A stretch of 64,000 nt of DNA from Chlorokybus atmophyticus (lineage: Eukaryota > Plantae > Mesostigma and Chlorokybus algae), in the NCBI GenBank assembly GCA_009103225.1, contig RHPI01003488.1:369788-433787 (forward strand), in the 5' to 3' direction. Made by a program: the position numbers and the translations under genes. Of the stretch, positions 27,600-64,000 are shown in pieces. Position 1 is the first letter of the stretch. Every line of letters starts with the position of its first letter. Below the pieces are notes generated by a model. It saw only the letters and a program-made list of their open reading frames with translations. It searched no databases and was not told where the DNA came from.

Positions 27600-30500
27600 T
27601 GCACCTATGCACTTGCCAGACATGTACACATGTATTGCATGTTATTCGCATGTCATATGCGTGCATGCGTGTCATGTTGTGTCATCGTTGACATTGATGC
27701 ATGTGAATGTGTCATTGTTGACATTAATGCATGTTAATGTGTCATATTGTACACACACACATATCCGACGTTTGCAAAGCAGCACCCAGTGTTACTCACT
27801 CATCTGGTCTTTCAACCAATGCACGCAACACACACGAACACACACACGCACGCGCACATATGCACGCGCTATCATACACACAGACTTGGATGTGAAATAG
27901 ACTTGGGTGTATTTATAGGCTCATGCTGCAAGTCGTAAAGTGAACAACATCATCATCCTCGCATTGACACCCGCATTGCACATGTATAAGGCAAACCCAC
28001 ATGCACACACGCACAGGCGACCACCCTAGGCATGGTGATATATACGCAACCCGATGCTGCTGCTGCCAGAACTTCTCCGGAGAGAATCTGTTTAAAGATT
28101 ATGGCGACACTCTGCCAATGCGTCACGCACTGCCACCGGCCGAGGTGGACGACTGGAGTCATTGATGTGCCACCAGTGCTGTTGATACGTGTTCGTGCTG
28201 GTGTGACACTGCTGCATTTGCGCATGGGAATCGTGTATGCGGTGTGCAGAATTGTGACTGCACACACGCAACCGTACATGCGTACGCACGCCCATGTGCA
28301 CCGGGGTCAGGACTAGCATTGCGNNNNNNNNNNNNNNNNNNNNNNNNNNNNNNNNNNNNNNNNNNNNNNNNNNNNNNNNNNNNNNNNNNNNNNNNNNNNN
28401 NNNNNNNNNNNNNNNNNNNNNNNNGGGGGGGCGGGGATGACGCTGGTGAACGACCGCAAGCTGGCGTGGCTGGCGCTTATCACGTGGACTCTCATTGATA
28501 GAGAGGCGAGTTGCGCACCTGCTGAGCGAATAGCCACCCACGCAGGATGGCTCTCGTCTAGCACGACAGACACGTACACACATGTGCTGATGATGGGGCG
28601 GAGAGCAATACACAGAGGACCCCCCGCCGCCCACTGAGCAGCAGCAGCAGAGCTTTCAAAACGCCGCCTCGGCCGCCTGCTGCGGTATGCCCGCCGCAGC
28701 CATGCTGTTCAGGCAGTGGCAGCAGTGCTGCCAGTGTGACACCCCATCAGTCCCATCAACAGCATCCCAATGTTGATTGCATGAAAGGGCTGCTGCTGCG
28801 TACAGGAGTCTACGTGGACAATGCTCGCCGCCTTTGCGCTGGCCTGGATGGACACATGCATGCGGCTAGGCAGGAAGGCGGCACTCCTCACTGACCAGGT
28901 AAGCCAGGGTAGGTTGCTTTGCGGCCACCTTGGACTCACCGATGCCCTGTGTGCGCGTCCTCGTGTTCATCTAAGTGTGCGTTCAGGTTGGTTGTACTCT
29001 TGGTTCAGCTCACCCGTCTGCATGCGGCCCAACTCGTGCGCGACGGCGACACGTGGTCGGTTGCATCCACTGCCGCCGCCTCCGACGTTCGTAGTGCTGG
29101 ACCCGGCCAGCCTGGGCCAGCCCCTCCACTTCCACTGCAGGACATGCAACGTAAGTATCCTCAGCTCCACGGAGATGGCATGCCATATCACAGGTAAAGT
29201 ACACATCGCATTGCCTGCCTGCTTGCTTGCCAAGCAGTGCTTTTTTAACAACTCTTGAGAGCTGTTCAAGAAAGCACTGCCTCATCATTATCATGATGCT
29301 CTCCTTGTCTCCTCTTGCTCTTGCCTTATTACAGCAGCTAACTAAACTTGTTTGGCCTTGTCTCTTGCTGCTCTTCTCTTCTCTTCTCTTCGTCAGGCCA
29401 GCCTGACGCTAGCATGGCGGACCGGAGTTCCTTGTGCACAGTGGCGCAGCCGTGCGCACGTGGAGCGAGCGGGTGGGGGCGCGCACAGGGTTAGCAGAAG
29501 GAGAGGACATGCAAAAGCAGCAGCAGTTGCAGCAGCAGCAGCAGCAGACGCAGCGAAGATCACGCACATCCAAGTACCTTGGGGTATGTAGGAGCGGTCA
29601 CCGCTGGAGGGTGCAGCTGCGCGTCAGCAAGAGACCCGTTTATCAGGGCACATACAGGTGAGTGGAGGGTTGTAAGAGAAACGTAGACACAAAGGTAGCA
29701 GTGCGTGGAAAGGAATTCACTTGCTTGCGCATGCATGGCAGGGATGAGAAGGAGGCGGCGCTGGCCTACGACAGGGCTGTGACAACGAGGGGCTTGATGG
29801 ACAAGCGCCTCAACAAAGTAAGCTTCCCCGACGACTTCCCGGGAGAGGCCAAAAACAAGGAAGGTGAGCGCTTACAAGCTCGTCAATCAGCCTGCAGGCC
29901 GATGGCATCGCACTTTATATGCATGTATGCACACAAGGCCCGCACGTCACGCAAAACAAGGACACGCGCATGCGTGTGTTCAGTGCCGACTGTGCTCAGC
30001 AACGCATCGAGAGGACAGCACAGCATGCCAAGCGCCTGAAAGCCGCTACAGAGCTTCGTTCGTGCGACACAGAGACGCCAGTGAAGAGTCTGACTACAGT
30101 CCATCGCGGTGCACCAGGTCAGAAGGCAACAACAAGCAGCTTTTCGCAACAAGAGCTTGCGCAGGTCCCTCTACTGCCTCACCTGCCACGCAGCTGTACC
30201 TTCATGTAGACGAGCAAGCCAATGCAGCTGGTGATGCCCATTCAGCATGCAAAACGGGACAGCGCAACACCCTGCACGATCAACAACTTCTCCCCCNNNN
30301 NNNNNNNNNNNNNNNNNNNNNNNNNNNNNNNNNNNNNNNNNNNNNNNNNNNNNNNNNNNCCCCGCCCTCCCCAACTTCTTTCCTTCGCTCAAAGCACAAA
30401 CCCGTCACCCGCGCCTCCACGGCCAACGGAGGAGAGGCCACATGAGACACGGGAGCATGTCTGGGCTTCCGTGAGCGCACTGCTGCGAGAGAGCCAACAG

Positions 30501-31400
30501 CTTGAGGAGGCCATTGGCGGCTTGGAGAGAGACCTGGCAACAAACCGCCAGCAGATTCCCGAGAGGGCTGGGCTGATTGTCGCGCTTAGACCAGATGGAT
30601 CCTTAAAGCCTTATCAGGCAGCGCTCGAGTCTCGTGGACAGCCGCCATGACCTTAAAGAGACGCTTGCGAGTCAGCGCAAGGCTTTGGGAGACACCTCAC
30701 GGGCCTTGCGAGAAGCCACCCTGCACTTTGCTAGACACTTGGCCTGAGTCTGACCTGCTAGTATCTCACAATGCTCAAGTAGTAACATGTCCATGAGCTG
30801 CAGTACCCGTGTCGCGTCAGCTTTCGATGCATGCACTGCTAACATAGTATATCTGCTGGTGCTTTGTGGGCACATCAACCTACTAGTGCAGGCTCGTCCG
30901 TTGTTGTTGTAATGTCATGTAGATGTGACTGACGTGATGTTGCTGACTGTCAGTGCAGGTATGTGTCATGCACAAGGCGACATGGAGACCCACTCAACAT
31001 ACATAGGGTCACCCACCGAGCACAGGATGTGCAGTGCTATCATGTGTGCACCAACACGAGGAGTGCATTCAAACAAGTTGTTGCAGTGGTCCAGTTGCCA
31101 AGTAGGTGTTACATGTGTTCACACTCAAGGCGCGAGGGAGGGGGAGGGGGAGGGCTGAGGGGAAGGGCAGAGGGGCCCTCGGTGACTTGGCAAGGGTTAC
31201 ACCAGCGGAGCACACAGTGAACGAGAAGTGGAAAAGAGAGGGCGGACAAGGACACGCAGAGCGAGGGAGCGGAGGGAGAGGGAGTCATGCTCGTCATTGC
31301 TTGCACCGCTGCTGACATGCTAGACTACCGCAACTCACAGTTGTTAATGGCCCTGTGGGCAGGTAATTGCAATTGCTAATATGCATGCCTAACGGGGTTT
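27600..31400 (+). repeat. Duplicated zf-AP2 unit A (gene plus conserved flanks)
   Basis: Upstream, intronic and downstream sequence is alignable by eye with 32600-36850 and with the reverse complement of 60090-63450. Contains N gaps at 28324-28423 and 30297-30359. Confidence 0.8.
28781..30650 (+). pseudogene. Zinc-finger/AP2/coiled-coil gene, copy A (frameshifted)
   Basis: FHCRTCNVSILSSTEMACHITG; SKYLGVCRSGHRWRVQLRVSKRPVYQGTY|RDEKEAALAYDRAVTTRGLMDKRLNKVSFP. Frameshifts relative to copy B in exon 2 and near 30590. Confidence 0.75.
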
Positions 31401-32059
31401 CAGGGTAGTGAAGATCAGGAACATACTGAGTAGAGTCGAGTTGTGCAGCCCGGTGGTACAATACAAATGACTGTGACTGCCTGCTGCATGCTGACTACGA
31501 TTGTGAATGCATGTTCGCATGCACCATATTGCATGCTTTGTACACTTCCTGTAAGCTGGCGAAAAGCTAGCATACACGGAGTAGCAGCTAAAGGCCGTTG
31601 ATAAGCAACTCTATGATTTCCATCTATGCAGGTCGGTCATATCAGCAACTCATTGGTAACATCATAGGCAGTAACTGAGGGACTTACGTGCCAATTATGA
31701 TCGCTTTACTTACGAGTTGCACTTGGTTCACTGGTTCGTGGCAAGCGGCCAACGAAATATGGCGTTGAGGTTTGCACACCATGTTTTGCTTTATGTTGAT
31801 GACGTGTTGCATTGCCGGAGTTTACAGCGTGTATGTACTTACGCCACCGGCCCCAAGTAGAGGGAAATGTGTGCATGCTGATACTGACATCAGCGTCAGA
31901 ATGTGCACATGCATGTGCACCCCATGTGTTGCTTTTGTCGATACAAGCAATGCAGGAGGTGAGCATCCCCTTCGCAAACATGATGATCTTCCCGCAGCTT
32001 GCATTACATTGCGCGATCACCAATTTGCAGCAATGGCTTGCAATCTTGGTCCCAATGAT

Positions 32060-32560
32060 CAATTGATCGCGTGCGCTCAAGCGCCGAGACTTTTTACTTT
32101 GGACAATTTGAAACCACCGCCGTGCTTAGCGATTGGGCGTTCAGTGCATGCCAAAAGAACGGTTGTGAAAAGAAACCCGCAATGGCATGAGACTTGCAAT
32201 TACAGCGCAAACAAGACAATTATTGTGATTTACAAGAGCAGACTGCGGTGACAAAGATTCATTCACTAGTTTGCCGACGGGTTCTTTTATGGTGATAAAG
32301 ATTACAATTAACAACAAAGTACAAGAAGTTTGTTTTTACATGTATGAACATTGTGAATAAAAAGAACGACTAGCATCTTAATTGTGTTGAAGATTATGGA
32401 GTATGCAAAAGCAGAAACGAAACGGCTCTTAGATTTGTGAGGCAAGGTTAAAGCAAGGACAACAATAATGTAGGACTTTGAGTGCGCGTAAACAGTGCGC
32501 GCTTTAAGCAAGTTGCCTTTGTATGCAAGTATTACATGTTCATTCATGCGCATGCCATGG
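32060..32560 (+). pseudogene. Possible degenerate RPA70 C-terminal (zinc-binding OB-fold)-like fragment
   Basis: Stop-interrupted frame TFYFGQFETTAVLSDWAFSACQKNGCEKK resembles the RPA1 W-x-Y-x-A-C-x(n)-C-x-K-K motif; by-eye only. Confidence 0.28.
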
Positions 32561-32599
32561 CGATGACCGTGTGTGTTGTCACCTGCCACATAGCAGTGA

Positions 32600-35500
32600 C
32601 GCGGCACAAAGATGCATAAATTGCATGCTCACTCACCTGGTTCTTCATCACTAATGTACACGCAATCACACACGCATACATATGCGCAAATACGCACACC
32701 ATAAATAACGACTTATAGGCATGTGTCCATGCATATGCTTGCAGGTCGACTTTTATTATAAGTACAAGTTATTAATAGATTAGCATCGCTGCATAGACAC
32801 GCACATAATGCATATAACACAAGGCGTATGCATACCCCATATGCACGCGGGCACCGTGCGGCTGAGGCAGCCGCTCTAGGCATAGTGATTTAAAAGCGCC
32901 CCGATGCTATTGAAGATGTTTGAGGTGAGGCTATCGATGATTATTGACACTCTGCCAATGCATGCACGGGTGGCCCAGCTTATGGTGAGAATCATTATCT
33001 TATCAACATGCCACTAGTGTTGGTACTAGCTGTTCGCATTAATGTCTGACTGTTGCATTTGCGCATGAGACTTGTATGTACGCTTGTGAAAGCCATTGCG
33101 CACACGCGCACACAAGGGTCGAATTTACCTTCTGGGGTCGCTGATGAAATGACTGCAAGCTGGCGCTTATCACAAAAGGGAACTCCAAGCTATCAAGAGA
33201 CTATTTGCGCGCCTGCTGAGCGAAGAAGGCAGACATGAAACATACACACATGCTTACGCAATGTGCATGCTCGTGCAATCTCTACTACTGTGCCTGAACA
33301 CAGGTTGAACACAGGTTTACAATGTAAGTAATTCGCTTGTTCCGTTGGCTTGTGTTACACCAGAAAGGTGTTTTGGTTTTGTGTGCACTGTCATCAGTAG
33401 GCTACTTTGCCATGTAGTTGGTGCACATCTTGTCTTGGTTGACTTAGTGAGGTAGCTGATGACGGTGCGGAGTGCAGTGCACAGAGCCCCGGCCGGCGAT
33501 GCTTATAGAGCAACAACAACAATCCGAGGCGAAGAGCCAAGTTTCGTGGCTTTGCTTATGGTGGGTTCTGAGCAGGAGGCGGCGGCGGCGCCTCAGCCTG
33601 CTCCGGTATGCCTCACGCTCACGAGGTCGATGCCAGCCGCAGCCATGCTGTCACAGGCAGCACTGCTGCTGCCAGTGTGACAGCCCATCATCCTCCCCAC
33701 AGCACGGAAGTGTCGATGGGATGAAAAGCCTGCTGCTGCGTACAGGAGTAGTACGTGACGTCGCCCGCCGCTTTGCGCTGGCCTGGATGGCCACATGCAT
33801 GCAGCTGGCAGCGGGGAGGTGGCAGTCATCGCTGATCAGGTAAGCCAGGGTTGCATGCTTTGCGGCCATCTTGGACTCACCAATGCCCTGTATGCGTGGG
33901 TTCACTTGTTCACTTGAGTGTGCTTGTTGTCAGGTTGATCTCTCTCATGGTTCAGCTCACCAGCCTGCATGCGGCCCAGCTTGTGCGTGAGGGCGACACG
34001 TGGTCGGTGGCGCCTAGTGCCGCCCCTCCCGCCAGGACGCCTTCTCATGCCGGGACGTTCGTGGTGCTGCACAGGGCAAGCCTGGGGCCCCGACTCCACT
34101 TCCACTGCAAGACATGCAACGTAAACGTCCTCAGCTCCAGGGAGATGGCATGCCATGTTACAGGTAAGGTGAACACACCGCTTTGCCTGCTTGCTTGCTT
34201 CAACAGCACTCCCGCTCTCATCATGGATGCTCTCGCTCTTGCCTTGTGTCCTCTTGCTTTATCGCAGCAGCTAATTGAACTTGTTTTGCCCTATCTCTTG
34301 CTCTTTCTTGTCGTCGCTTCGGCCAGGCCAGTCTGACGCTAGCATGGCCGACCTCGCCAGCCACTTGACCGTGTGCAGCGGCGACACCGTGCGCACGTGG
34401 AGCAAGCTCGTGGGCGCGCGCAGAGGGCCTGCCGACAAGGAGGACAACCATCATCATCAGCGGCAACGGCCAGGCACACGTCCCACATCCAAGTACTTTG
34501 GGGTCAGTAAGAGCGATGACCGCTGGAGGGTGCAGCTGAGCTTCAACAAGGGTCCGGGACTTAGGTATCAGGCCACACACTGGTGGGTTGAGGTTGGCAA
34601 AAACCTAGTCCTTGATGTGGTAAAAGGAGTTCACTTGCTTGCGCATGCATGGCAGGGATGAGAAGGAGGCGGCGCTGGCCGACGACAGGGCTGTGACAAC
34701 GAGGGGCTTGACGTACAAGCGCCTCAACAACATGAGCTTTCCCGAAGACTTTGCAGAAGAGGTCGAGAATCAGGAAGGTGAGAGCTTACACGCTCGTCAA
34801 CCAGCCTGCCAGCCAATGCATGCATGCATGCACGAAAGGCCTGCACGTCATCACAACAGGAGCATGCGCATGCGTGTGTACAGGCAGTGCCGAATGCGCT
34901 CAGCATGGTGTCGGGAGGACACCACAGCATGCCAAGCGCCTGAAAGCGGCTGCAGAGCTCACAGACGAGGCCAGTGAAGACTCTGACTACAGTCAGCCAT
35001 CTAGGTGCACCAGGTCGGAAGGCAATAAGCAGCTGTGCGCAAGTACAAGAGCTTGCGCGACTTCCTCAACTGCCTCGCCTGCTGAGGCCAACACGCCAGG
35101 CAAGGCCCCCTCTCACACTGCCACGCGGCTGTATCTTTCGGTACACAAGCAAGCCAATGCAGCCCGTTCGACAAGACTGGGACAGCGCAACAACGCCACA
35201 CACGATCAACATCTCCCCTCCTCCGCTCAAAGCACAAATCCGTCACCCGCGCCACCACTGCCAACGGAGGAGAGGCCACGTGAGACACGAGAGCATGTTT
35301 GGGCTTCTGTGAACGCACTGCTGCGAGAGAGCCATCAGCGAGAGGAGGCCGCTCGCGGCTTGGAGAGGGACCTGGCAACAACCCGCCAACGGGTGCCCGA
35401 GGTTGATGGGCGAATTGTCGCGCTCAAAGAACATATGGATGACCTTATCAGGCAGCGCGCGCGTCTCGTGGACAGCTGCCATGGTCTGGAAGAGACGCTT

Positions 35501-36850
35501 GCGAGCCAGCGCAAGGCTGTGGCAGACACCTCACGGGCATTGCGAGAAGCCACGGTGCGCTTCGCTGGACACTTGACCTGAGCCTGACGATTCAAAACGC
35601 CAAAACAGCAACATTCCCAACAGCTACATGACCCGTTAACTGTCTTCAGCTTTTCAGTGTACACGGAGTGTGAAGGGAGATCGTATGCACTGTTGCGGTG
35701 ATTTGTCTGCTTGTGCTCAGTAACCACATCAACCTGCAGTTGCATCCAGGTTCGCCTTGTTCGTTTCACTACCAATGTGAAGATGTGAGTGACATTGCTG
35801 GCCATCACTGCAGATCTGTCAGGCATAAGGCGACATGGACCGACTCACATAGGGTTGAAACCATCATGTGTGCATGGAGAGTGCAAGCGTTGCAGAGAGT
35901 TCCATGAGTCAAGGTCTTAATAGTACTTAGACTGACTTTGCAGCTCAGTTGATATTAAGTGAACATTCAATGGCAGATAGCACTTATGCCGGCATGTATC
36001 AGTCACCTTCAAGAACAAAGCATACATAGATGTGCTTGACAGCATGCATGCTACTGACCTAGCATACTGTCTCTTACAGAGTGGCACTTTAGTCAAGGGC
36101 CCTCAACATAATCAATGACTTTCGATGATCTGCAGATGCATCAAGGTGCACTTTGTTGCCGATTGTGCTCTACCTCGCACAACACATATCCAAGCGCAAT
36201 CGGCCAGAGTTTCACTTTATACCGCGCCACCGAGCACCGCTGCCAACTTCCAACGTCCCGCGCAGTGCGAAGCTTGGCGTGGTAGAGTCACAGTTTATTC
36301 GTTTCACCCGCCTCCTTTGCACTTGTCGCATGCATTTCATACGCAATGACCGAGGAGCTGCTGGCCATGCAAGCGGATGGGCATCCTCTCAAGCCTACTA
36401 ACGACATTGCAAGCGCACATGGTGAAAGACGAAAGGCTGCATCTACTGCACGCCCTCAGCGCTACTATACAAGATGCTGTTTCAGACGCTGCAGCGCCAC
36501 CTGTTGGCAACAATGGCACGGGGAGCAGGTCAGGTCGACTAGTGAAGCAACGTGCCCGTGCAAGGGACATTGTGGCACACATACCACACCACCTACAGCT
36601 GCAACAACATAACTGCAGCACGCATTTACACTGCACAGCGAAGTGCACTGACGTACAGTGCAGTGCGGGGCAGGGTTTGGAATAGCGACCGAAGCGGAGG
36701 GAGAGAGGGGAAGGGACAGTGAGAGCGGGTGGCGGAGACATGGAGAGGAACATGTTGGTCATGCTGTGATTACCGTCATTGCAAACGGACAGCTAACCTA
36801 CAACCCTGTGGGCAGGTAATTGGATGCTAACACGTGTGCATGCATGTCTA
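32600..36850 (+). repeat. Duplicated zf-AP2 unit B (gene plus conserved flanks)
   Basis: Shares upstream, intronic and downstream blocks with units A and C; CCCTGTGGGCAGGTAATTG occurs downstream of both A (~31352) and B (~36805). Confidence 0.8.
33721..35581 (+). CDS. Zinc-finger/AP2-domain/coiled-coil putative transcription factor, copy B (apparently intact)
   Basis: Five exons with compatible phases (2,1,2,1): ...FHCKTCNVNVLSSREMACHVTG|QSDASMADLASHL...SKYFGVSKSDDRWRVQLSFNKG...|DEKEAALADDRAVTTRGL...SFP|...coiled coil LLRESHQREEAARGLERDL...FAGHLT*. Start codon uncertain. Confidence 0.75.
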
Positions 36851-37585: not shown

Positions 37586-40500
37586 TCAGCTCTCTCTTTC
37601 CAGGGCCTTGGCGACAACCGTGTCCTCATGGCGTTTGCTGGTGTCCTCTGCACCCGACTGATAACCAGGGCTCGCGCTGCGCCTGCCGGGAGTGGGAGAT
37701 CGCTCAGCCGCTTTCGCCACAACCATGTCTTCTGACCTAAGCTCCGCAGAGTCATCTACGTCCAACTCCTCATCAATAGCAACAGCTGGTGTCGGGACCC
37801 GCGCGCTAGTGGTTGCTGTGGTGGTTGTCGTCTCCAAGGCAGCCTCCCCATTGGGTGGCGCCTGTTCCAGAACGCCGTCGGCGTCGTCACTGAGTTCAAA
37901 CGTGATCGCGCTGCTGCCGTACTCAAGGAGCTGCGAGATGTTCACGTCTTCTCCGACAAGTGCCGAGATGGCCGCCACGGTGGCCGCGGAGTCTGCTTCG
38001 CTGAACTCTCCTTTGCCCATCTGCGGCGACAGACGCTCCCGAATGGCTTCGTAGCGAAGCATCAACAACTGGCGCCTGTCACGAAACACAGTCAATAATG
38101 TACCTTAACTGCAGCAAACTAACATACTACTTGAGAGGACAAGCAAGTGGCATTACTTGTTGGTGAACTGGCTCGGGAAGAAGCCTGGAAAGTATCTTTG
38201 CAAGAACGAGAAGACAAGCACGTGTCCGACGGGCGTCATTGGAGTAATAAGAATAATTGAGAACGGCACCAGCGTCAGCATGTCACGCACTGTGCGTCGC
38301 AAGGCTCCAACCTGCAGTGGGGACAAGCTCAGTGTAATGTAAGCCTCTGAATGTTAGTATAATCCCAACGCCTAGAATAATAACGATGTAATCAACACAC
38401 CTCCTGTGGACACATCCATGTTGCAGCAGAGACACGAAACACAGCAACCTGTTGTAACAGGCAGGAGCGTACCTCTCGAGGTTTCAATGTTGTTCCTGTC
38501 ACGGCTTGCCAAAACAGCCGCGTGGAGTAGTTGATGTCGCTCGACATCAACTTCAGCCCTCTGCTGTAGAAGTTGACGCCCTCCCTCACCTTCTGCACTG
38601 ATTCCCTAATGGACATTGCAGTCCGTGTCTGGAAGTCCACCGCCGTGGACTCATCCATAATGCCCAACCGGTTCTTGAGATCTACCCAGCACGCAACTCC
38701 ACAACTCAAACACCTGTACTCATCAAAGACTGCAACACCCAAGTCATAGGAAACACAACATACCGGGCACGTCGGATGCCAGAGCAGCGAGAACATCATC
38801 GTCTACCAAGTAGGCTTCTCCTCGCTCGACAATGGCGCTCAGCGTGTCCACTCTCCGTTCAAGGATGCCAAACTCAACGACCACGAGCACTGTCTCCTCC
38901 TCGTCTGTGCGCACGGCATCGCCACCTACCAATACATCACACATAAGCCTCTTGATGAAATGCACCAGTTGCCTAGTTGCAGATGCAACTGAGGCATGCC
39001 TTCAAGCTCCATTGCAAAGCGCATGCAGTGGAGCTTGAGGCAGCGTGGGAACTGATGCAGAATACAAACCACGTGCGAAGGCCTGGACTCACCGGTGACA
39101 TCCAGCAAGTCGCTCTCCAGAAAGCCGTATATCCGCTCCATCTCAAGCTGTAGCGTGCGTACCGCCAACTTGCGCCGCAGTTCACTGACCTGCGTGTGTG
39201 CCAGACATTAAAACCTGTATGCGCCAACAGAGCAAACGACACGCATACCTGATCATCCATCTCTCGTATGTCCGAGGCAAGCCGTGTGCGTGCCAAAGTG
39301 CCGCGCTGTCGCAACCTTGCTTCGCGCGCTTTGCTTGCTGAGTTCAGGCTGTGTTCCAGCTCCTCAGCCTGCGCGGTCATTGAGTAACAAGACACTGCGC
39401 CACGATGAACATAAAGACAGGGCAGCTGTCGGGCAGATCCACACCTCAATGAGGAGCTCACTCTCCTTCAGCTCCCTTATTGCCTTCTGTGAAGGTGGCC
39501 GCGGCAACGGCAATGTCGACACCCCCTCTGTGTCAATACCCTTGTTGCCATTGAGACGCGCCCAGACTTGCCGCAGCGTGCCCGCAAACCCTTGCAGCTT
39601 CTGCAAATGGCGCATGTGTTGTGTTGCAAAGGTCTTACAACTCGCAGGCTTTGTCAGGACAACCACGCCGCATGACACACCTGCCGCGCTGTGTACATGT
39701 CCAGTTGTCGGAGTTGCTGCATCAAGTCATCCACGCTCTTGAAGGCAGGCTGGCCAACAGATGATGTGAGTGGTGATGGCAAGCCCAACCCGCAAGCAGC
39801 AACTCAGCGTGCAGATGAGAGAGTAAGGGAGTGGAGAGGCTCATTCAATGCTGAGTGATGCCAGCTGTGAGCTTACCTCTGCGGCCTCGTCACCCTCTGT
39901 AGTGCGTGGAGGCAAGACCGACAGCAGGGCATCAGATTTTAACCTTAGCTTCTCGGTGGTGTCCGTGGCCTTGTGGCTCACCACATTGACAGCCTCTACA
40001 TCATTCTGCCAACATGTTAATGGAAGTAAGCACTGAATCGTGAACCATGCTGGGTTCCTGCAAGTTGACTTGCGCTATACTCGAGCACACAACACCACAC
40101 AGCAATGTCTTTACTTTATCTAAATCACGGGAGCCGGACATTGCATGCCAATCACAGAGACCACAAATGACAGCATGTTTGGGTGTAGGCATAAGGTGCT
40201 CTGGGCCATACGAGCTCACAACAATGCACAGCACTATGTCACAACCAATATACACCATCAGAACCTTCGCACGCAAACTCACCTCGTAAGCTTGCTCCAG
40301 TGCGCCCGTGCTTTCAAGCTGTCTCAAGTCCCTGCCCAGGCTGGTGGACAGCGCGAGCATGTCCTCGGCGTGCTTTCGCACCTCATCAATGTCGTCCTCT
40401 GACACCGCGCTTTGGCCATTTGCGTTGGAGAAGGGGACGTTCTGCAGCAACTGGTCCGCTCGGATGATGTTGCGGAACAGACGGCGTATCTGCGCAACAT

Positions 40501-47866: not shown

Positions 47867-48036
<170 letters not shown>

Positions 48037-48163
48037 GCTCACTCGCTCACTCGCGCGCATGCTGTATGTGTCGCTGCGCACACATCACATAAGTGCATGC
48101 GCGCAGATTGTGTGACACTCTGACTAGAGGAAGTATGCAGTATGCAGAACTTGCCACATTGGC

Positions 48164-49354
48164 ATGCGTTTATGGGCATATGACAAGCATGTTGAGCACA
48201 TGCAAGATCCGCAGCCGCTAGCTCTGTGGTTCAAGCACATCAGGCGCTGCGTTGCAGGCCAAGCAGGCGACAATAAGCTGCCCGAAGGCAGCGTGTGCTG
48301 CTCAAAGGCTCCCAAAGTCCCGATGCAGGTGAGCCAAACTTTTATGCGCGGATCGATTAAAACAATGTCACCATTTTGCAGCCAGCCCACTCCATCGCAT
48401 GTCACGCCATACACCGCACGAGTATCATCAAGATGTCTGTGCTCACCGTGCGTTGGCATGCTGTCGCACATACCAGGCCAACGACGATGCCAACCAGGAG
48501 CTGACCCCGAAGCAGTTCACTCTGCTGATCGTGTTGCGCGCTGCTGCCACGTCCAGCGACAGCGAGGAGGCCGCGGTGCTGATCGGCGAGAAGAAGCGCG
48601 GGTTCGGCGAGGGCTACTTCAACGGCTTCGGGGGCAAAGTGGAGCCGGGCGAGAGCGTCGAAGAGGCGGCGCAACGCGAGATGAGGGAAGAGGCGGGCGT
48701 CACGGCCGTCGATATGGAGCGGTGCGGCTTGCTGGTGTTCAGGTTTGACGACGTGTTGCGACCCTGGGAGGTACACACATACGCGCACATGGACACGCAG
48801 AGGTGCACGGGCATGCATGCGCACACTCACCCTCAAACTCACTTCCACGCACACGCGCATGCGCGCACACAAATATACGAGCACGCGCACACGCACACGC
48901 AGGCACACACAGACACTCTCGTTCATCCTCCATCTCACGTCCGCAACTGCGCGCATGTGCGCACGTACGCATGTGCGCACGTACCCATGTGCACACGCAC
49001 GCACACTCTGTTTGTGTGCATGCATGCATGCGTGCACACAAACTGTATCGGTGCGTGCACGCGGTCTAAGTGCGTGCGTACACGCGCCAACAACAGCATT
49101 GTCTGTTCGTGAATGCACGTCAGGTGCACGTGTTCCGGGCGCGCGGCTATGATGGCGAGTTGCAAGAGACCGACGAGATGCGTCCCGTCTGGTTCCCCGT
49201 CAGCGCGATACCGTTCGACCGCATGTGGGCCGACGACATCCACTGGTACCCGCTCTTCCTCAAGGGCAGCAAGTTCAAGGGCGAGTTCCACTTCACGCAA
49301 ACAACGCGACTGGTCTGGCACGAACTGCATGAAGTTGAATCCCTACCGGATTGA
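48164..49354 (+). CDS. NUDT1: Nudix hydrolase, MTH1/NUDT1-like 8-oxo-dGTPase
   Basis: KKRGFGEGYFNGFGGKVEPGESVEEAAQREMREEAG (Nudix box) and TDEMRPVWFPVSAIPFDRMWADDIHWYPLFL. Start/first exon uncertain. Confidence 0.92.
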
Positions 49355-50620: not shown

Positions 50621-50749
50621 CCCCGTCACCGTCGCCGTGGGACCTGGCTGCATCGCGGCGCACGTGTGGCCTGTTGAGGAGGGATACGAGCATTCAATAC
50701 AGTAGCAGTCAGTAATTCATCAATCAATCAACCTTGCGTACAATGGGCA

Positions 50750-52597: not shown

Positions 52598-55500
52598 TAG
52601 GGTAAGACCAGTATATTTCGGACACCTAATTAAGGATAGGTTTTGTACTATGTTATACCTATTTGATGGTGTTAGGTGATAGATTATGGGATAGCCCTTG
52701 GCGCGTACTGCTTGACACCGTTGATGGCATATTTTTAGGGTTAGTATTGTGCTGTCAGCGGTCAGTCAAGTAGACAGGTGTCAGCGAGTGGTCTTAAAAC
52801 CCTATTTTCTTAATTTCGGACGGCTGAAAACGGCTGCTTTCAGCCTGCTGTGGTGGTGTGCTGGCGTCTGACAGGCCTTAGCCTGTGCTGACGTGTTGCC
52901 CTTGCCTAGTGGCGCCCGTGACGTACCTTTCAACCTCGCTGCCATCGCCGCAGAGGCTGGTGGCAAGGTTGTTGTTGTTGTTGGTTGTCCGAACCTAGGC
53001 GAGGTGGTTGGCGTCTGCTGCCTGGTGCGCCTTCCTAGTCGTCTTGTGGCGCCGAGACGCTCCGTCCGCCCGTCCGGCCTCCATCATGGTGAGTCCTAGT
53101 CGGCACATGCTTGGTGTTGTAGTTGAAACCCTAGGTGTGCCGTTTGCCTTGCTTGCCTGCACAGCCTTGCATGCACTCTGTGCGTGCGTGATTGTTTTTG
53201 TGTGTGTTGTTGGCTTGGTGTGTGTGCGCGTTGTTCTGTCTTGCTGTGTGGTTGTTAGGTTGGGGGCTTGGGTTGTTGGCATTGCATCCAGGTGTGTGCA
53301 TGTGTGTTTGTATTCTGCATAAGCATTGCATGCTGCATTGCGATTCAGCACTGTGCATGTGTGTGGACATTGCATGCTGGTGCTGTAGTGTTTCATTGGC
53401 ACAGTGTGTTGCACATATGTACATGGCCCTAGCTCTGTGGCCTCTCAAGAATGACTCTATCGAAACCCCATAGCAGCTAGCTTGAGGTTCAGCAATAGGC
53501 GAGCAGGAGTTGCGGTGGGGGCTGCTGCATCCGCAACCATGGTTGCCTGGTGCATCTCAGATCTGGTGGGGGACAGGGACATGTAGCGGGCAGGTTGTGG
53601 ACTTCCTGTGGGGCTTGGTTGTGGTGTCATGTTGTGCAGGGGGTCGTCCAGGTAGGCTGCATCTTGTACCTCCGTGTTCAAGTCGATAAAGCAAGGCCTG
53701 GCTCCTGCAAGTGTGTTTATGTGGGTGGGCCCTGCTCTGGTTATTGCTTGTTGCTGTGCTAACAGCTTGGCCTGCTTGGCAGCCTCCTTCTCAGCCTTGG
53801 CAGCCTCCTTCTCTGCCTTGGCGGCCTCCTTCTCAATCCTGGCTTGCTGCTTCTGCCAGGCCAGGGCCTCCCGCTGTGCAGCCTTCTCCACACGCTGCGC
53901 AGCTGCCAGCGCCTTCTTGCTTGCTGCTTCTGTCCTCTTCCGCGCTGCCTCCTGCTTGCGCGCCTCGCCTGATGCCTTCTTTGCTGCCAGCTCTGCCCTC
54001 TTGGCTTGCAGGGCCTTGATGTACCCTTCAGATGTGAGGCAAAGGGAGCCCTGAATCTGAGGGTTCTTGGCATTCTTCTGTTGCCACGCCGAAGGGCCAG
54101 CCTGCTGCTGCATGACTCTAAAGTTGATGTTGTTGGTGGCACCACCAGCACCTGCAGCCCCTTGAGAAGGTGGGTCATTGTTGACGTTGATGGTAATGGT
54201 GTTGTTGTTGTTGGTGATGTTGACATTGTTGTTGTTGACAATGCTGGGCATCACGGGCTCTGGAGGCTTGTTCTCCTTGTCGCTGCTGCTGTCATCATCT
54301 GTGGCATCAGAGCCGCCCTCCTCATCAAATGGCACAGGTACTCCTTGCCCATCCAACACGGGGCCTCCGAACTCGTGCTGCACTTGTGCATGAGCCAGGT
54401 CTGGGGTGACTTCGTCCGCCGTTGGTTTGGGCAGCTGTGGCAACTTGTCGTCCAATGCATGTACATTAACAGGCCAGATCCCTGTCACAAGGACAAGGTA
54501 TGTTTACCACGCTGTGTCTTCTGCAATTAGGTCAGCAATTAGGCCTAGGCATGCATGGGTGCTGTACCTGTCTTTTTGAACCCGCTCGTGATGTTGGCAG
54601 GTGTCATGGCTAGGTAAAAGCGCTTTGCTGTCAGCTCCACGAACTTCAGCTTGGTGATGGGGCAAGTGGGGTCTTCAACTCTCCACTTTAGGAACTCCTT
54701 CTTGTAGTGCGCCTTCAGCGACTTAAAGCAGCTCACATCCAGCACCTAAGTATGCATGGTATGTGTACATCAGCATTTGCATCTCAGCCAGCATGCATGC
54801 AAACATGCGCATCTCACCTGCATCAGGTGTGTCATATGGGCAGGGAATGTCAGCATAGTGACACCGTTGGCCCGTGCCTTCTCCAGGAGCTCAGGATTCA
54901 TACGAGAGGAATGGCCGTCAAGCAACAGAAGAACAGGCCTGTCCGGGCTGGCGCCACCAGGTATGTGGTTCAAGAACTGCTTGAACTAGTCAGCAAACAG
55001 GTCCAACGTCATGTATGCATTTTCCTGCATGCGCATGAAGGACCCATATGGGGCAGCCTGCACATAGTTCGATGTGAAGCGTGACCCCTTCAGGATGTGC
55101 ATTGGAGGCATAGAGGTGCCAGCAGCGCTGACGCATGCCATTACGCTCATATGTTCTCGGCTGCTAGCTTGGTTGTAGTATGGGTTTTTGTACCCCTTTT
55201 TGCATATCACTTTCACAGTTCCTGTCATTCACAACATTGTTAGCAACTTGCAGATGGCCTCTAACAGCAACTTGTGTGCATGTGTGAGCGCAGGTACATA
55301 CCAACATTGTCTGGCTCAAAGCCAGTCTCGTCCGCATTGAAGATGCGTGTGGGATCGTCGATGCCAAGCTCCTCCAGAGTCTTTGTGTACAGGTCAAAGA
55401 AGCCCTCCACATTCTCCCTGGTACACGCCTGCCACCTCCTCCGATCTAGACCCTCAGCTACTCTTGATGCCAACTGGTGGCGTGTCATGAGCAACCGCAA

Positions 55501-55757
55501 CCACTTGTAGCCAGGCATGCCACTGGCACCAAACCTCTTCAGCCTCATCTTGGGGTCATCCTTCAGCATGCTGACCACCTGCTCACGCAACACCTAGGTG
55601 AGTCCAGCAGCACACTGCACACATCATACACACACAACAGTCATGCACACACAGGCCTATTGTTCACACTTGCACACACAACCTCAACAACCAAGTGACT
55701 TCACCTTCTGTAACAGGGCTGGGCGGGTGACACCAAAGTTGCTGTCCGCACACCGGT

Positions 55758-56297
55758 TGTCACAGCCCACTCGACCACAAAAGACTTGGTGCTTGGTGCT
55801 TTTATGGTCGATTTGTGGTAATTTGAAGTACCTTCCCGTTACATTCCCCCCCACTTAAGAACGCTGACGTCCTCGGCAGCTGCCCGGTCAGCTGGGGAAT
55901 TACCCAAGGGGTTTGTTAGGGTCGGTCACCGGCCCCACCACCCAAGGACCGGCCAATTTAGGCCCATACCGGTAAACGCGCGCATAGCGCTCCGCTGCCG
56001 GCCCCACAGGTCGCGTCGCCGCGATAGGCAGGTCGCGCCCTGCCGCGCCGACTGAACTGGTCAGGTCACTTCGGCGCGACTGCCATTAGGCAAGTCGCGA
56101 CCCATCGATGATGGCACTCATAAAGTGACCATTTACGATTATTGGATCGAGAAACAACGACCGCGGAATTCGTGTGCAAGGCAGGAATCGAACCCGGGAC
56201 TCAAGCTCCGATGACCAATGTCACAGCCCACTCGACCACAAAAGACTTGGTGCTTTTATGGTCGATTTGTGGTAGTTTGAAGTACCTTCCCGTTACA
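55758..56297 (-). mobile_element. Terminal-repeat retrotransposon in miniature (TRIM), 540 bp, non-autonomous
   Basis: LTRs 56297-56219 (79 bp) and 55843-55758 (86 bp), TG...CA ends, differing by a 7 bp duplication and 1 substitution. 5 bp TSD ACCGG (plus strand CCGGT at 55753-55757 and 56298-56302), PBS-like TGGTCATCGGAGC (56217-56205), PPT AGTGGGGGGAA, 375 bp internal region. Confidence 0.93.
56184..56238 (-). promoter_or_regulatory. tRNA-type (type 2) Pol III promoter spanning the TRIM 5' LTR/PBS junction
   Basis: A-box TGGTCGAGTGG (56238-56228) and B-box GGTTCGATTCC (56194-56184) start 44 nt apart, as positions 8 and 52 of a tRNA do. Confidence 0.65.
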
Positions 56298-57399
56298 CCG
56301 GTTGATCCAAGTGACAAGCTCCTTCTCCTCCGCATCGCTCATCACAGGTGGCCTCCCCATAGGCACTGGAAGCTGCAGCTTCTTAGGGCAGTGCACATAG
56401 TCACAAAGGGTGGACTTGGCCACACCATGGGTGGCAGCAGATATCCTAAGGCCCATCCCAGCCTTCACATCATCAACAGCCACTGCCATCTTCAACAAGA
56501 GACCCTGACCCCGTGCCCCCCAGTTGACATATCGCATGCCCTTGCGCCTGGTGGTGCCTAGGCAGCTTCTGAGAGCAGCCTTACTGCGGCCCCTGGCACG
56601 TTTGCCCAAGCGAGGGGCAGAGGGTGTGCTGCATGCTCTCTTGCTACCACACGTAGGAGTGGTCTCCTGTATTGCATAGCAGTCAGAAACATAGCAGCCC
56701 TAGCACACAACAGTAGCGGACTTGTATGACAGTAAGCATGTCAACACCATCTCACCTCATCTTCTTGTGTGCATCCTGTTGTGCATTGACTGGCCTGCCC
56801 CTCTAGTGTGCCTCTCATGTGCACCATGAATGCACCCTCCCTATCGCAACTAACAGACAACGCTTCTCAATACACAACACATCCCCCTCACCAATGCACA
56901 CCGCCACTGCCTCACCACCACACCACCAACACTTGCCCACACCCAACTTCAGACTGCTGCTATCATAGCAGCAGTTGATGATCAACTGACTCACAAAACT
57001 GCCAATTTTCGCACTTGTACATTACCCGCCACAACTTTCAAAAGCCAAAGCTGTTAAGCAAACCCTCTTAGGGGGGTTAACTAGACAGCTCAGGCAGTCT
57101 ACACAGTTATCGAGCACCACCGTTGGCCAAGTACAACTCTATCCTTAAGGGTTCAAAGTCAAGTAAACCATATTTCAACACTTGAAATTAAATACTTGAC
57201 TGAGTGCCTTCGCGCCATTACTCAACCAATGATGGTGAAACCTAGTGGAGGCATTGCATTGGCTCACAGCTACACGCCAGAACAACAACCACCTCATTTA
57301 GCCGCCAAATGCCGCAACTACAGCGTGGCAAATAGCCCTTAGCGCGCCTTGTCCGAAATTATGACACTGTCCGAACTAAGTCGGTCTTACCCTAGTCAA

Positions 57400-59100: not shown

Positions 59101-59271
59101 TTGATGCACAAGCACACACGTATACATTGCGTCGCATGGTGCGTGCGCGCGTATAGCACATGCACGCACTCCTTCTCAGTTCCACTCACGTGCAAAAGCA
59201 CAAGAGCGCGCATGCGCACGCACGCACATAACGACCCTCCCCGAGTTGACTTACATAGGGTCCCACTCACC

Positions 59272-59920
59272 NNNNNNNNNNNNNNNNNNNNNNNNNNNNN
59301 NNNNNNNNNNNNNNNNNNNNNNNNNNNNNNNNNNNNNNNNNNNNNNNNNNNNNNNNNNNNNNNNNNNNNNNNNNNNNNNNNNNNNNNNNNNNNNNNNNNN
59401 NNNNNNNNNNNNNNNNNNNNNNNNNNNNNNNNNNNNNNNNNNNNNNNNNNNNNNNNNNNNNNNNNNNNNNNNNNNNNNNNNNNNNNNNNNNNNNNNNNNN
59501 NNNNNNNNNNNNNNNNNNNNNNNNNNNNNNNNNNNNNNNNNNNNNNNNNNNNNNNNNNNNNNNNNNNNNNNNNNNNNNNNNNNNNNNNNNNNNNNNNNNN
59601 NNNNNNNNNNNNNNNNNNNNNNNNNNNNNNNNNNNNNNNNNNNNNNNNNNNNNNNNNNNNNNNNNNNNNNNNNNNNNNNNNNNNNNNNNNNNNNNNNNNN
59701 NNNNNNNNNNNNNNNNNNNNNNNNNNNNNNNNNNNNNNNNNNNNNNNNNNNNNNNNNNNNNNNNNNNNNNNNNNNNNNNNNNNNNNNNNNNNNNNNNNNN
59801 NNNNNNNNNNNNNNNNNNNNNNNNNNNNNNNNNNNNNNNNNNNNNNNNNNNNNNNNNNNNNNNNNNNNNNNNNNNNNNNNNNNNNNNNNNNNNNNNNNNN
59901 NNNNNNNNNNNNNNNNNNNN
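59272..59920. other. Assembly gap (N run)
   Basis: Seen directly; smaller gaps near 19406-19420, 28324-28423 and 30297-30359. Confidence 1.
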
Positions 59921-60089
59921 TCCTCTCTCCTCTTGCTAGCGGTTTGCTCAGCCAGCAGTGCGTCTCCGCTGCTCTCCCAGCGCATAGAAGTTGTCCCCCC
60001 TCGGGTGGTCACCTTCCGGAGCTAGTGGCTAAGTCCGCCACCCGCGCCGCTGCGCCCGCTACGTGCTATTGAGATGGTTACTTTGTAAC

Positions 60090-63000
60090 AGGTCAGCAAG
60101 TAAGTGTGCAACTAGTTGAGACCTCTTTGACACAGGACGTCTCCGAAACGCTGGCACTCCTCGTGTACACATGGTGGGTGGGACCCTATGTAAGTCAACT
60201 CGGTCTTCGTGTCGCCATGTGCACGATACATCTACCAGATCTCTTGCAGCGCAACAACGGTCAGCAATGTCACTCACATCTTCAGGACATTAACTTCAAG
60301 ATGTATAAGCATGCAGCTGCAGATCGATGTGCCTACACCAGCAGGCATACTACCACATCAGTACGCCGCATTCTTTGTATACACGCTTGCGCTATGTGCT
60401 GCGGGTACATGTTGGTACAGATATTGGTATACACCCTATACACTGAAAGCTGACGACAGTCCTCGGGTACTGTAGCTGTTGGAACGGATACTGTTTTAGC
60501 GTTTAGGATGCGTCGGGCTCACGTCAGCTGTCTAGAAAATGCAGCGTGGCTTCTCACAATGGCCGCGTGGTGTCTCCCAAAGCCTTGCGCTGACTCGCAA
60601 GCGTCTCTTCAAGGCCACGGCGGCTGTCCACGAGACCCGCGCGCTGCCTAATAAGGTCATCCATCTGTGCTTTAAGCGAGATGATCCGCCCATCCATCTC
60701 TGGCATCCGTTGGCGGTTAGTTGCCAGGTCTCTTTCCGAGCCGCAAACACCCTCCTCAAACTGTTGGCTTTCTCGCAGCAGTGTGTTTACGGAAGCCCAG
60801 GTTTGCTCTCGTGTCTCACGTGGCCTCTCGTCCAATGGCTGTGACGCGGGTGGTGACGGGTGTGTGCTTTGAGCGGAGGAGGGGGCATGCTGATCGTGCG
60901 GGCCGTTGTTGTGCTGTCCCGTCTTGCACGCCGAGTGGGCTGCACGACGCTCAGCTGCATTGGCTGCTCATCTACAGGAAGGTACAGTCGCGTGGTAGTG
61001 CAATGAGAGGCAGACTTGCCTGGCGTGGTGTCGGCCTCAGCCGGCGAGGGGCTCGCGCAAGCTCTCGTGGCCCAAAGCTGTTGTCTTGTTACCTAGTACT
61101 ATAGCCAGAGTCTTCATTTGCCTTGTTTATGTCGCCCAAACATACCTCTGCAAACGCTTTCGGGCGCTTGGAATGCTGAGCACAGTCTGCAGAGTCTGTA
61201 CACATGCACGCGCATTCTTGGTGTGCGTGGTGACATGCGGGCCTCGTGTGCATGCATGTATAGTGCATGCATGTAGAGCCTCTCAATGACTGAGTGCGAT
61301 GCCATTTGCTGAGTGGTTGACGAGCATGTAAGCTCTCACCTTCCTTGTTGTTGGCCTTTTCCGAGAAGTCGTCGGGGAAGCTCGCTCTGTTGAGGCGCTT
61401 GTCCACTAAGCCCCTCATTGTCACAACCCTGTCGTAGGCCAGCGCCGCCTCCTTCTCATTGCTGCCATGCATGCGCAAGCAAATAGATTTTCCTTTCACC
61501 ACGCGCTGCTGCCAACTTAGGGACCACGTTTGTCTTACAGCCTCCACTCACCCGTATGTGCCCTCATACACGGATCTCTTGCGGACGCGCAGCAGCACCC
61601 TCCAACGGGGAGCGCAGTTTGAAGCCGTCATAAAGTCCCCAAAGTACTTGGATGTGCCTGACCTTCGCTGCTGGTTGTCCTCCTTGTCGGCATTCTCACT
61701 GCTGCGCGCCCCCACGAGGTTGCTCCACGTGCGCACGGTGGCGCCGCTGCACACGGTCAAGTGGCTGGCGGGCAGGTCCGCCATGCTAGCGTCAGGCTGG
61801 CCTGCCGCAAAGAAGACAAGAGAAAGGCAAGAGACAAGGCAAAACAAGTTCAACCTGTTTCAGTGACGTTCAATCAGCTGCTGCTAAGGCAAGAGCAAGA
61901 GGAGACAAGGCAAGGGGAAGCGCATCCATGGTAATAACGAGGCGGTGCCCTCTCTCGAGTGCTTTTCAAGCAAGCACTGCTTGTCAAGTAAGCAATCAGG
62001 CAATGCGATGTGTATGTTACCTGTGATATGGCATGCTATCTTCCTAGAGCTGAGGATGTTTACGTTGCATGTCCTGCAGTGGAAGTGGAGGCGGGGCCCT
62101 AGGCTTGCCCTGTGCAGCACCACGGACGTCCCGGCATGAGAAGGCGTCCTGGCGGGAGGGGCAGCACTGGGCGCCACCGACCGCGTGTCGCCCTCGCGCA
62201 CGAGCTGGGCCGCATGCAGGCTGGTGAGCTGAACCATGAGCGCCACCACCAACCTGACAACGCAAACTCACATGAGTGAATGCACACACAGGGCAGGGCG
62301 TTGGTGAGTGCACGATGGTTGCACAGCATACCCTGGCCTAACCTTACCTGGTCAGCGAGGAGTGCTGCCGCCTCCCTGCCCAGCCGCATGCATGTGTCCA
62401 TTCCAGCGCAAAGCGGCGGGCAATGTCCACGTACTCCTCCTGTACGCAGCACCAGTAGCAGCAGGCTTTTCATCCCCCATCAACACCTGGGTGCTGTTGA
62501 TGGGATGTCTGGTGGCAGCATTGGCAGCCGGTCACATTGACAACCTGCTGAGCATGGCTGCTGCGCGCATGCCGGAGCACGCGGCCTGAGGCGGCATTGT
62601 TCAAGTTCTGGTGCTGCTGCTGCTGCTGCTGCGCAGTGGGCCGTCATTAGCTCGTTGGGGTGAGTGGAGCAGCAGCCTACTGAGGATGTGTGTCTCGTCA
62701 TAGACCAGAGCCTACCTGTGGATCTCTAGCCTTCTTCGCGTTGCCGTTGGAGTCCCCCCGGTCGTAATCAGTGCTAGTCGCACATTCTCCTACGTGCGCA
62801 CTGCGCGGAATCAGTCATCTGTCTTGTGCAGATGTATACGCAACATATCATGCGCAAATGCAACAGTCATATGCATACACCAGCGCGAACAGTTATCAAC
62901 AACACTGGTGGAATTGGCTTAGTACTGACTTTTACCATCCGTGTTCTTGGCCGTGGCATGCACTGGCCCAGAGAGTGTGGCGCAACTCTCCTGCAGCCTT

Positions 63001-63450
63001 CCTCGGGAGAAATTCAGCAGCATTGGGGCGCTTACAGATACGATTCACCATGCCTGCGGCGGTTGTGCGTGTGCATGTGGGTATTCCTTGTGTCAAATGT
63101 GCAATGCGCATTGCCTATGATTAAAGGCATATGTCAAGTGGATGTCGTGGTGGATGCGAGGATGCTGATTATGGAACTTGACGATTACGAACACATGCTC
63201 GCAAGTCCAACAATGCGCGTATGCTTGTACGTGCAAGTAGTAAGTATATGTGCGCATATATGAGTGTGAGCGTGCACAATGGTGATGAAGAATAAGTGAA
63301 GCAAACAACACCGCACAAATGCGTTTGTGAAGATGATACATCTTGCATGCACGCAAATGACATGCAAACATAGTTATATGGGCCATAAGATTGTTAACTC
63401 AAGCGCACAAAGTTTGCGTGCATAGTTTGGCGTAAACACATGTGGCGCTC
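60090..63450 (-). repeat. Duplicated zf-AP2 unit C (inverted relative to A and B)
   Basis: Reverse complement aligns by eye with the upstream flank, exons, introns and downstream flank of units A and B. Confidence 0.8.
60524..62473 (-). pseudogene. Zinc-finger/AP2/coiled-coil gene, copy C (nonsense/frameshift lesions)
   Basis: FHCRTCNVNILSSRKIACHITG; SKYFGDFMTASNCAPRWRVLLRVRKRSVYEGTY|GNEKEAALAYDRVVTMRGL. In-frame TAA near 61089 and CGA-to-TGA at 60554. Confidence 0.75.
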
Positions 63451-63957: not shown

Positions 63958-64000
63958 TGCCAATTTTCGCACTTGTACATTACCCGCCACAACTTTCAAA
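63958..64000 (+). repeat. 43 bp identical to 57000-57042 inside the pogo element; runs off the window edge
   Basis: TGCCAATTTTCGCACTTGTACATTACCCGCCACAACTTTCAAA occurs at both sites. Confidence 0.85.

Follow-up and report, generated by a model that had tools for sequence, protein, structure and literature searches.

ERF/DREB proteins, the largest AP2 subfamily in plants, have a single AP2 domain and nothing else. Among AP2/ERF proteins of known structure, the one closest to the domain described here is TEM1 (RAV subfamily; PDB 7ET4/7ET5), with the same three-stranded sheet and helix and 37-38% identity, and WRI1 (7WQ5) and AtERF1 (1GCC) are the next-best fold matches. Closest in sequence, among the matches listed by the exhaustive search described below, are the AP2 repeats of Cymbomonas tetramitiformis KAK3287254 (1828 amino acids) and Mesostigma viride Mv18901 (about 1540 amino acids), with 35-45% identity per repeat. 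We analyzed three related genes in a 64,000-nucleotide stretch of DNA (the window), which near-identical JGI protein models identify as part of scaffold 32 of the streptophyte alga Chlorokybus atmophyticus. In contrast to KAK3287254 and Mv18901, which carry 7-14 tandem AP2 repeats, each of the three genes encodes a single AP2 domain and a C-terminal coiled coil. These genes form an AP2 mini-family within the AP2/ERF superfamily that is real but ordinary, specific to its lineage, and partly degenerating. They are probably a local family in partial decay, in which one or two copies at most still work. An earlier note on this DNA presumed that plant AP2 domains usually pair with a second AP2 domain or a B3 domain, a premise that the ERF/DREB proteins contradict.

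A repeat scan and a BLAST self-comparison identified three related segments in the window, designated A, B, and C, with 70-85% nucleotide identity in their cores and a mean column identity of 78% in the three-way alignment. With permissive BLAST settings the homology reached into the flanks, giving units of 3.2-3.4 kb each. The core segments (repeat scan and BLAST self-comparison) and the units with their flanks (permissive BLAST) are as follows.

28637-30825, plus strand: core homology of copy A
33630-35669, plus strand: core homology of copy B
60431-62621, minus strand: core homology of copy C
27775-31017, plus strand: unit A, flanks included; gene model Chlat1 4999 / Chrsp32S08948 (P0003)
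32607-35981, plus strand: unit B, flanks included; gene model Chlat1 5000 / Chrsp32S08949 (P0001)
60058-63292, minus strand: unit C, flanks included; gene model Chlat1 5006 / Chrsp32S04979 (P0002)

The permissive comparison also gave a possible weak extension of unit A to 31398. Copies A and B are in tandem, with a start-to-start spacing of ~4.83-4.97 kb, and copy C is inverted, ~25 kb from B, with unrelated genes in between. The BLAST coordinates thus reproduce the arrangement reported in the earlier note, three units of more than 3 kb of which two are in tandem and one is inverted about 25 kb away. Assembly gaps (runs of N) lie at 28324-28424, at 30297-30359 (63 N, inside A), and at 59272-59920, the last ~140 bp past the downstream end of C.

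Canonical GT-AG splicing of copy B yields one open frame of 450 amino acids in five exons with all splice sites intact; the earlier note, too, had B in frame over its five exons. The homologous donors (GT) and acceptors (AG) of all four introns are retained in A and C.

33721-35581, plus strand: copy B coding span, stop included; exons 33721-33839, 33934-34163, 34327-34582, 34656-34777, and 34956-35581
28781-30747, plus strand: copy A exon span; homologues of the B exons at 28781-28898, 28987-29193, 29397-29657, 29742-29863, and 30052-30747
60554-62473, minus strand: copy C exon span; homologues of the B exons at 62473-62348, 62253-62021, 61801-61552, 61461-61340, and 61147-60554

The introns are 66-84% identical and the exons 74-92%, and the flanks align almost as well as the exons, so that exons, intron positions, and noncoding flanks are all common to the three units, as had also been claimed. 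Because introns and flanks align nearly like exons, it was genomic DNA, not cDNA, that was duplicated.

All three copies are already annotated as genes. A protein search returned two near-identical entries, P0001 (jgi/Chlat1/5000/Chrsp32S08949; copy B, 468 amino acids) and P0002 (jgi/Chlat1/5006/Chrsp32S04979; copy C, 348 amino acids), the precomputed Pfam field being empty for both. The model of copy A, P0003 (jgi/Chlat1/4999/Chrsp32S08948; EukProt 'Chlorokybus_atmophyticus'), was found by the exhaustive HMMER search. The annotated 468-residue B model differs from the 450-residue frame in its intron 3 donor, near 34566, and its intron 4 acceptor, at 34884. Exact-protein look-ups in genomic and transcript contigs gave no match for P0001 or for the open reading frame of B exon 5, and no paper that treats these three genes was found in the literature.

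An 18-nucleotide island, CTGYTGCATTTGCGCATG, is the same in all three copies except for one C/T difference (28209-28226, 33050-33067, and 62849-62866). It lies ~0.4-0.7 kb upstream of the start codon, in flank that is otherwise ~60-65% identical, and may be a cis-regulatory element or a piece of a 5' exon. Scans for Rfam families and tRNAs across the entire window returned no hits, and the conserved noncoding blocks are therefore not known RNAs.

The AP2 domain is split in each copy by intron 3, which cuts it between strand 3 and the helix.

29566-29655 and 29743-29838, plus strand: copy A AP2 domain, interrupted by intron 3; among the three copies it is the most canonical
34485-34580 and 34657-34752, plus strand: copy B AP2 domain, with G to A in LGT, Y to D in AYD, and a 2-residue insertion
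61655-61554 and 61460-61365, minus strand: copy C AP2 domain, with the GV after strand 1 replaced by GDFMTA

The identity of this domain, which the earlier note had proposed, is secure on four lines of evidence. A profile of the three copies searched against the PDB (maximum E-value 10) gave four matches, all AP2/ERF proteins, including TEM1 (8.9e-5), WRI1 (9e-4), and AtERF1 (0.16). The three-copy profile was needed because a single-sequence phmmer search of the PDB with the 450-residue B protein gave no match. Second, an exhaustive HMMER search of 1.84 billion representative proteins at E<=1e-3, with a 200-position profile covering the N-terminal/finger-to-AP2 region only, gave 2370 matches. 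Among the 150 of these that were listed, all except the three local proteins align only at positions ~100-200, the AP2 half of the profile. They are mostly multi-AP2 proteins, such as KAK3287254 (named 'AP2/ERF domain-containing protein') and Mv18901. Third, a word-indexed search with the AP2 profile gave 41 relatives, of which 29 carry a precomputed PF00847 assignment and none an unrelated family; HNH_3 is also present on 2 of the 29. Fourth, an AlphaFold model of the copy A domain, made with the relatives as alignment, has a predicted local distance difference test score (pLDDT) of 80 and comprises three strands (residues 11-14, 17-24, and 27-34) and one helix (37-51). The top eight Foldseek matches of this model in the PDB are structures of TEM1, WRI1, and AtERF1, with a match probability of 1.00 and root mean square deviations of 1.4-2.1 Å.

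Because the relatives include small AP2 proteins from metagenomes, two of which carry HNH_3, an origin from a giant virus or an HNH-AP2 homing endonuclease was considered. It was rejected in view of the spliceosomal introns, a guanine-plus-cytosine content like that of the surroundings, and the lack of HNH in the units.

The Chlorokybus domain keeps the SKY-GV, RW, GT[YF], and EAAxAYD motifs of the plant AP2/ERF domain, and has in common with KAK3287254 and Mv18901 the pattern TSKYLGV...RW...G(S/T)(Y/F)..E.EAA.AYDRA. In contrast to plant AP2/ERF domains, its loop between strands 2 and 3 is short, and the proteins are without a B3 domain, a second AP2 domain, an EAR motif, or other plant motifs. 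Plant AP2/ERF proteins have no equivalent of their N-terminal helices, finger remnant, or coiled coil, and nothing in KAK3287254 or Mv18901 matches their N-terminal/finger half.

An alignment of 44 sequences has four invariant core positions (G10, E39, A40, and A41) and five nearly invariant ones (V11, L42, A43, Y44, and D45). Copy A keeps all of the conserved core residues (GV, W, the G of LGT, and EAA-AYD). In copy B, LGT has become QAT and AYD has become ADD, in addition to the 2-residue insertion. Copy C has an in-frame insertion of 12 nucleotides (4 amino acids) and has lost the GV after strand 1 (YFGDFMTA).

The C terminus of copy B was modeled as one long helix.

35282-35578, plus strand: copy B C-terminal coiled coil, about 99 amino acids (AlphaFold helix, heptads, and weak SMC and M-protein matches)

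This helix spans residues 354-449 of the model (~95 residues) with pLDDT of about 80-93. A single heptad register is continuous over ~90 residues, and in the best 28-residue window seven of the eight a/d positions are L, I, V, or M, a count reached by 0.5% of shuffled sequences. The only NCBIfam matches were weak ones of coiled-coil type, to SMC and M protein. The modeled helix and the continuous heptads agree with the C-terminal coiled coil claimed in the earlier note, and a coiled coil through which the protein would dimerize is a reasonable reading of them.

The family appears to have no further members. This statement derives from the exhaustive HMMER search, and hence from the N-terminal/finger-to-AP2 half of the protein, in which, among the 150 matches listed from 1.84 billion representatives, no protein outside the trio aligns with the N-terminal/finger portion. 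The word-indexed protein search missed P0003, so its negatives are unreliable for this low-complexity, Q/A-rich protein; for example, a word-indexed search with the coiled coil as the query gave no match, but it also missed the protein from which the query was taken. Within the databases searched and the matches listed, the combination of a finger-like motif, an AP2 domain, and a coiled coil appears from sequence comparison to be lineage specific and unique to the trio. The architecture therefore looks as unusual as the earlier note had suggested, except that its finger is unproven.

The finger-like motif was located at the end of exon 2.

29124-29204, plus strand: copy A finger-like motif, LHFHCRTCNVSILSSTEMACHITG followed by KVH, with the last His past the predicted donor
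34094-34174, plus strand: copy B finger-like motif, LHFHCKTCNVNVLSSREMACHVTG followed by KVN, with the predicted donor after 34163 and Asn at the fourth-ligand position
62010-62090, minus strand: copy C finger-like motif, LHFHCRTCNVNILSSRKIACHITG followed by NIH, with the last His past the predicted donor

Across the copies the genomic sequence reads LHFHC(R/K)TCNV..LSS..(M/I)ACH(I/V)TG(K/N)(V/I)(H/N). Copies A and C fit C-x2-C-x12-H-x5-H, with hydrophobic residues where a classical finger has them, only if translation of the genomic sequence continues past the predicted donor. Because the predicted donor of intron 2 (ACAG/GTAA) falls within the Gly codon, the fourth ligand is missing from every spliced model. 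The would-be fourth-ligand codons, K-V-H, K-V-N, and N-I-H, lie directly past the donor (29194-29204, 34164-34174, and 62010-62020), and in the spliced products the motif ends at C-C-H, with three of four ligands.

The spacing of the C2H2 ligands and the 'GK.H' ending are typical of U1-like, zf-met, and JAZ-type fingers (PF12874 and PF12171). By that consensus, the genomic sequence of A and C resembles U1-like/zf-met fingers in its spacing, F-x-C-x2-C-x3-hydrophobic-x5-hydrophobic-x2-H-x3-G-K/N-x-H. Unlike those fingers, the Chlorokybus motif has its last His past the predicted donor (Asn in B). A profile of the three read-through fingers also had no significant match in the PDB; the best E-value was 0.28, and no match covered more than CxxC. 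The full-length model shows a beta-beta-alpha unit in the finger region (strands 96-98 and 103-105, helix 108-116) at low confidence, with pLDDT below about 55. Of the U1/zf-met module described in the earlier note, the spacing of the Cys and His residues in read-through A and C stands, and the case for the module itself is weak, since the fourth ligand lies past the predicted donor or is Asn and the PDB profile search gave no significant match. By its sequence pattern the motif may be the remnant of a finger, or an unproven finger.

If intron 2 were retained, A and C would gain a complete finger, but the frame would meet a stop 16-40 codons on.

A U1-like finger that binds RNA or DNA, joined to an AP2 domain and a long dimerizing coiled coil, might be a Chlorokybus-specific invention in which intron 2 acts as a switch and the copies are subfunctionalizing rather than dying. 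If so, transcripts that retain intron 2 would yield a short product that has the whole finger but lacks the AP2 domain, and spliced transcripts would yield an AP2 and coiled-coil factor with a crippled finger. We regard this reading as very unlikely.

The condition of the copies was assessed from their reading frames and substitution rates. dN/dS, the ratio of nonsynonymous to synonymous substitution rates, was estimated by the Nei-Gojobori method in the copy B frame for the three copy pairs, with the two shifted frames of the same nucleotides as the control. It was 0.55-0.59 in the true frame for all three pairs versus 0.89-1.14 in the shifted frames, and third codon positions changed most in the B frame. 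The lower true-frame ratio and the third-position excess show that this frame truly codes for protein and that purifying selection acted on it to some extent during divergence. That selection was weak. The synonymous rate (dS, 0.27-0.30) was close to the intron distance (0.24-0.32). The N terminus, finger, and coiled coil had dN/dS of 0.33-0.62, and the AP2 region, with only 67 codons and hence noisy ratios, had 0.85-1.47. The AP2 region is under relaxed constraint.

Ratios above 1 in the AP2 region (1.47 for B-C and 1.29 for A-C), and the annotation of all three copies as genes, could suggest a functional, diversifying family of transcription factors in which the AP2 changes reflect positive selection for new DNA specificities. 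However, the changes fall within the structural core, on the LGT glycine, the AYD tyrosine, and the GV after strand 1, which are invariant or nearly so in the 44 relatives, and not on the surface, where new specificity would be expected to arise. The ratios come from just those 67 codons, and frameshifts accompany the AP2 changes. Diversification of this kind is very improbable.

Relative to the B frame, the first three exons of copy A have net length changes of -1, -23, and -7, respectively. Within the coiled coil of exon 5 is a net 4-nucleotide frameshift (-2/+6), from which the remainder of the coil runs in another frame to the conserved stop. Deletions of 23 and 7 nucleotides are not typical sequencing errors, and copy A is a pseudogene or a truncated gene. 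Exon 5 of copy C has three 1-nucleotide deletions in its low-complexity part, and a CGA-to-TGA change places a stop 12 codons early (60554-60556). Copy C is not necessarily dead, because splicing to another conserved acceptor, AATGCAG, would keep the coiled coil in frame with exon 4. Of the lesions that the earlier note had attributed to A and C, the frameshifts in A exons 1, 2, 3, and 5 are thus evident, whereas the damage to C, an in-frame insertion, three 1-nucleotide deletions, and a slightly early stop, is milder than had been implied.

The best AP2 domain, that of A, thus sits in the most disrupted frame, and B, the only copy whose frame is complete, has damage in its AP2 domain. All three might even be dead, the remains of a recently pseudogenized orphan gene whose codon signal was inherited from a functional ancestor. 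The several frameshifts in A, the loss of the conserved GV through the insertion in C, and the early stop in C would agree with this explanation, as would the G-to-A and Y-to-D changes of B at nearly invariant AP2 positions with its 2-residue insertion, the AP2-domain dN/dS of 0.85-1.47, and an exon identity only slightly above that of the introns. However, an overall dN/dS of 0.55-0.59, compared with ~1.0 in shifted frames, indicates selection during part of the divergence. Copy B keeps its 450-codon frame, five exons, and all splice sites intact, and dN/dS in the coiled coil and N terminus is 0.34-0.62. Loss of all three copies is therefore unlikely, and a family in partial decay, with at most one or two working members, is the reading we carry forward.

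The history of the copies can be approached through their similarity to each other. The three pairwise distances are nearly equal, and the nearest pair switches along the unit (chi-square 96, 24 degrees of freedom, p = 1.3e-10). In coordinates of copy B, the closest pairs are as follows.

33550-33705: closest pair A-C
34194-34352: closest pair A-C
34353-34527: closest pair B-C
34842-35039: closest pair A-B
35239-35388: closest pair A-B

Such mosaic similarity is what gene conversion or recombination between neighboring paralogues leaves behind. We infer the following order and mechanism. One ancestral gene would have given rise to local segmental duplications, one in tandem and one inverted, each of which took along the introns and about 1 kb of flank, and gene conversion would later have moved sequence among the copies as they evolved under relaxed constraint. 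Each protein is laid out as an N-terminal helical region, a C2H2-like finger remnant, an intron-split AP2/ERF domain, a low-complexity linker, and a coiled coil of ~95 residues. By analogy with AP2/ERF proteins, the ancestral product may have been a sequence-specific DNA-binding factor with a single AP2 domain that dimerized through its C-terminal coiled coil.

The co-duplicated introns and flanks, near-equal distances, and mosaic similarity are alike in other local tandem and inverted duplicates with gene conversion, the ordinary birth and death of gene families. In such families the copies likewise decay at unequal rates, and the Chlorokybus cluster has nothing distinctive in this regard.

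A second tandem duplication is present at 790-3190 and 5499-8158 on the minus strand, with 68-82% identity over matched blocks and a period of about 4.7-5.0 kb. The exon translation of this gene matches M18 aspartyl aminopeptidases (human DNPEP-type, E = 1e-12). Because the M18 gene is also tandemly duplicated, local tandem duplication is common in this region.

The earlier note had offered two explanations for the copies, spread by a transposable element or a lineage-specific expansion of a transcription factor. In the first, the unit would be, or would ride on, a Helitron, a DNA transposon, or a captured gene fragment that copied the gene together with its flanks. Duplicated flanks are what such an element would produce, and the inverted copy lies ~25 kb off, beyond unrelated genes. 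Open reading frame fragments that resemble a pogo/Tigger-type transposase lie between B and C.

53457-56609, minus strand: pogo/Tigger-like open reading frame fragments; helix-turn-helix-like N terminus at 56256-56609, '...IFNADETGF' at 55261-55593, and '...GIWPVN' with a Lys/Ala/Glu-rich tail at 53457-54488

A PDB sequence search with these fragments gave no match. An exact 44-nucleotide direct repeat, at 56999 and 63957, also brackets C; however, it is ~0.7 kb and 3 kb outside the C homology and has no counterpart near A or B. The homology fades gradually at both unit ends with no sharp common terminus, and neither inverted repeats bounding A or B nor terminal direct repeats were found. The units contain no reading frame for a transposase, a Rep/helicase, or a reverse transcriptase, the AP2 gene being their only coherent coding sequence, and they keep spliceosomal introns and codon-level constraint, as a host gene would. 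Among the matches listed from the protein representatives, the only family members are the three copies in the window. With fuzzy edges, no terminal repeats, no transposase, and all known members in one window, transposition is an improbable source of the copies, and local duplication is the better account. The second explanation holds in part: there are three local, lineage-specific copies, but the expansion is small and under relaxed constraint, and it includes at least one pseudogene.

Several points weigh against the account of a local, partly decayed family shaped by gene conversion. The mosaic pattern may stem in part from alignment uncertainty in indel-rich segments. The count of three copies refers to the DNA of the window and to annotated proteins, and there may be unannotated copies elsewhere in the genome. 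The splice sites are predictions, and the public models make splice choices that vary from copy to copy. The assembly is a draft with N gaps, and single-base indels in it could be errors, in which case the damage to C, and less plausibly that to A, would be overstated. Finally, a dN/dS of 0.55 fits either one functional lineage accompanied by dead copies or uniformly weak constraint.

The surroundings of the units contain other repeats. The 44-nucleotide direct repeat, CTGCCAATTTTCGCACTTGTACATTACCC..., occupies 56999-57042 and 63957-64000 and probably represents the beginning of a dispersed repeat; the window ends within its second copy. Another dispersed repeat (18673-19145 and 26949-27403, 72% identity) and short tandem arrays of 20-40-bp units (26916-27141 and 27678-27745) lie just upstream of unit A. 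At 47868-48036 is a run of ~169 C with one N, a long poly-proline in one frame, which may be an assembly artifact or a homopolymer tract. Ordinary host genes lie between B and C, putatively a LETM1-like exon (37586-38095, minus strand), a TMEM184/DUF300-like membrane protein (43565-44377, plus strand), and an exon of a NUDIX/MutT-like hydrolase (48399-49112, plus strand; GFGGKVEPGES...EEAGV).

The locus neatly illustrates, on a small scale, how tandem and inverted duplicates can go on to undergo gene conversion, and has little importance beyond annotation. Chlat1 4999, 5000, and 5006 can now carry the label of divergent single-AP2, coiled-coil proteins, with at least one pseudogene among them. 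For counts of transcription-factor families in early-diverging streptophyte algae, the trio illustrates that decaying, lineage-specific paralogues can either inflate or escape AP2/ERF tallies.

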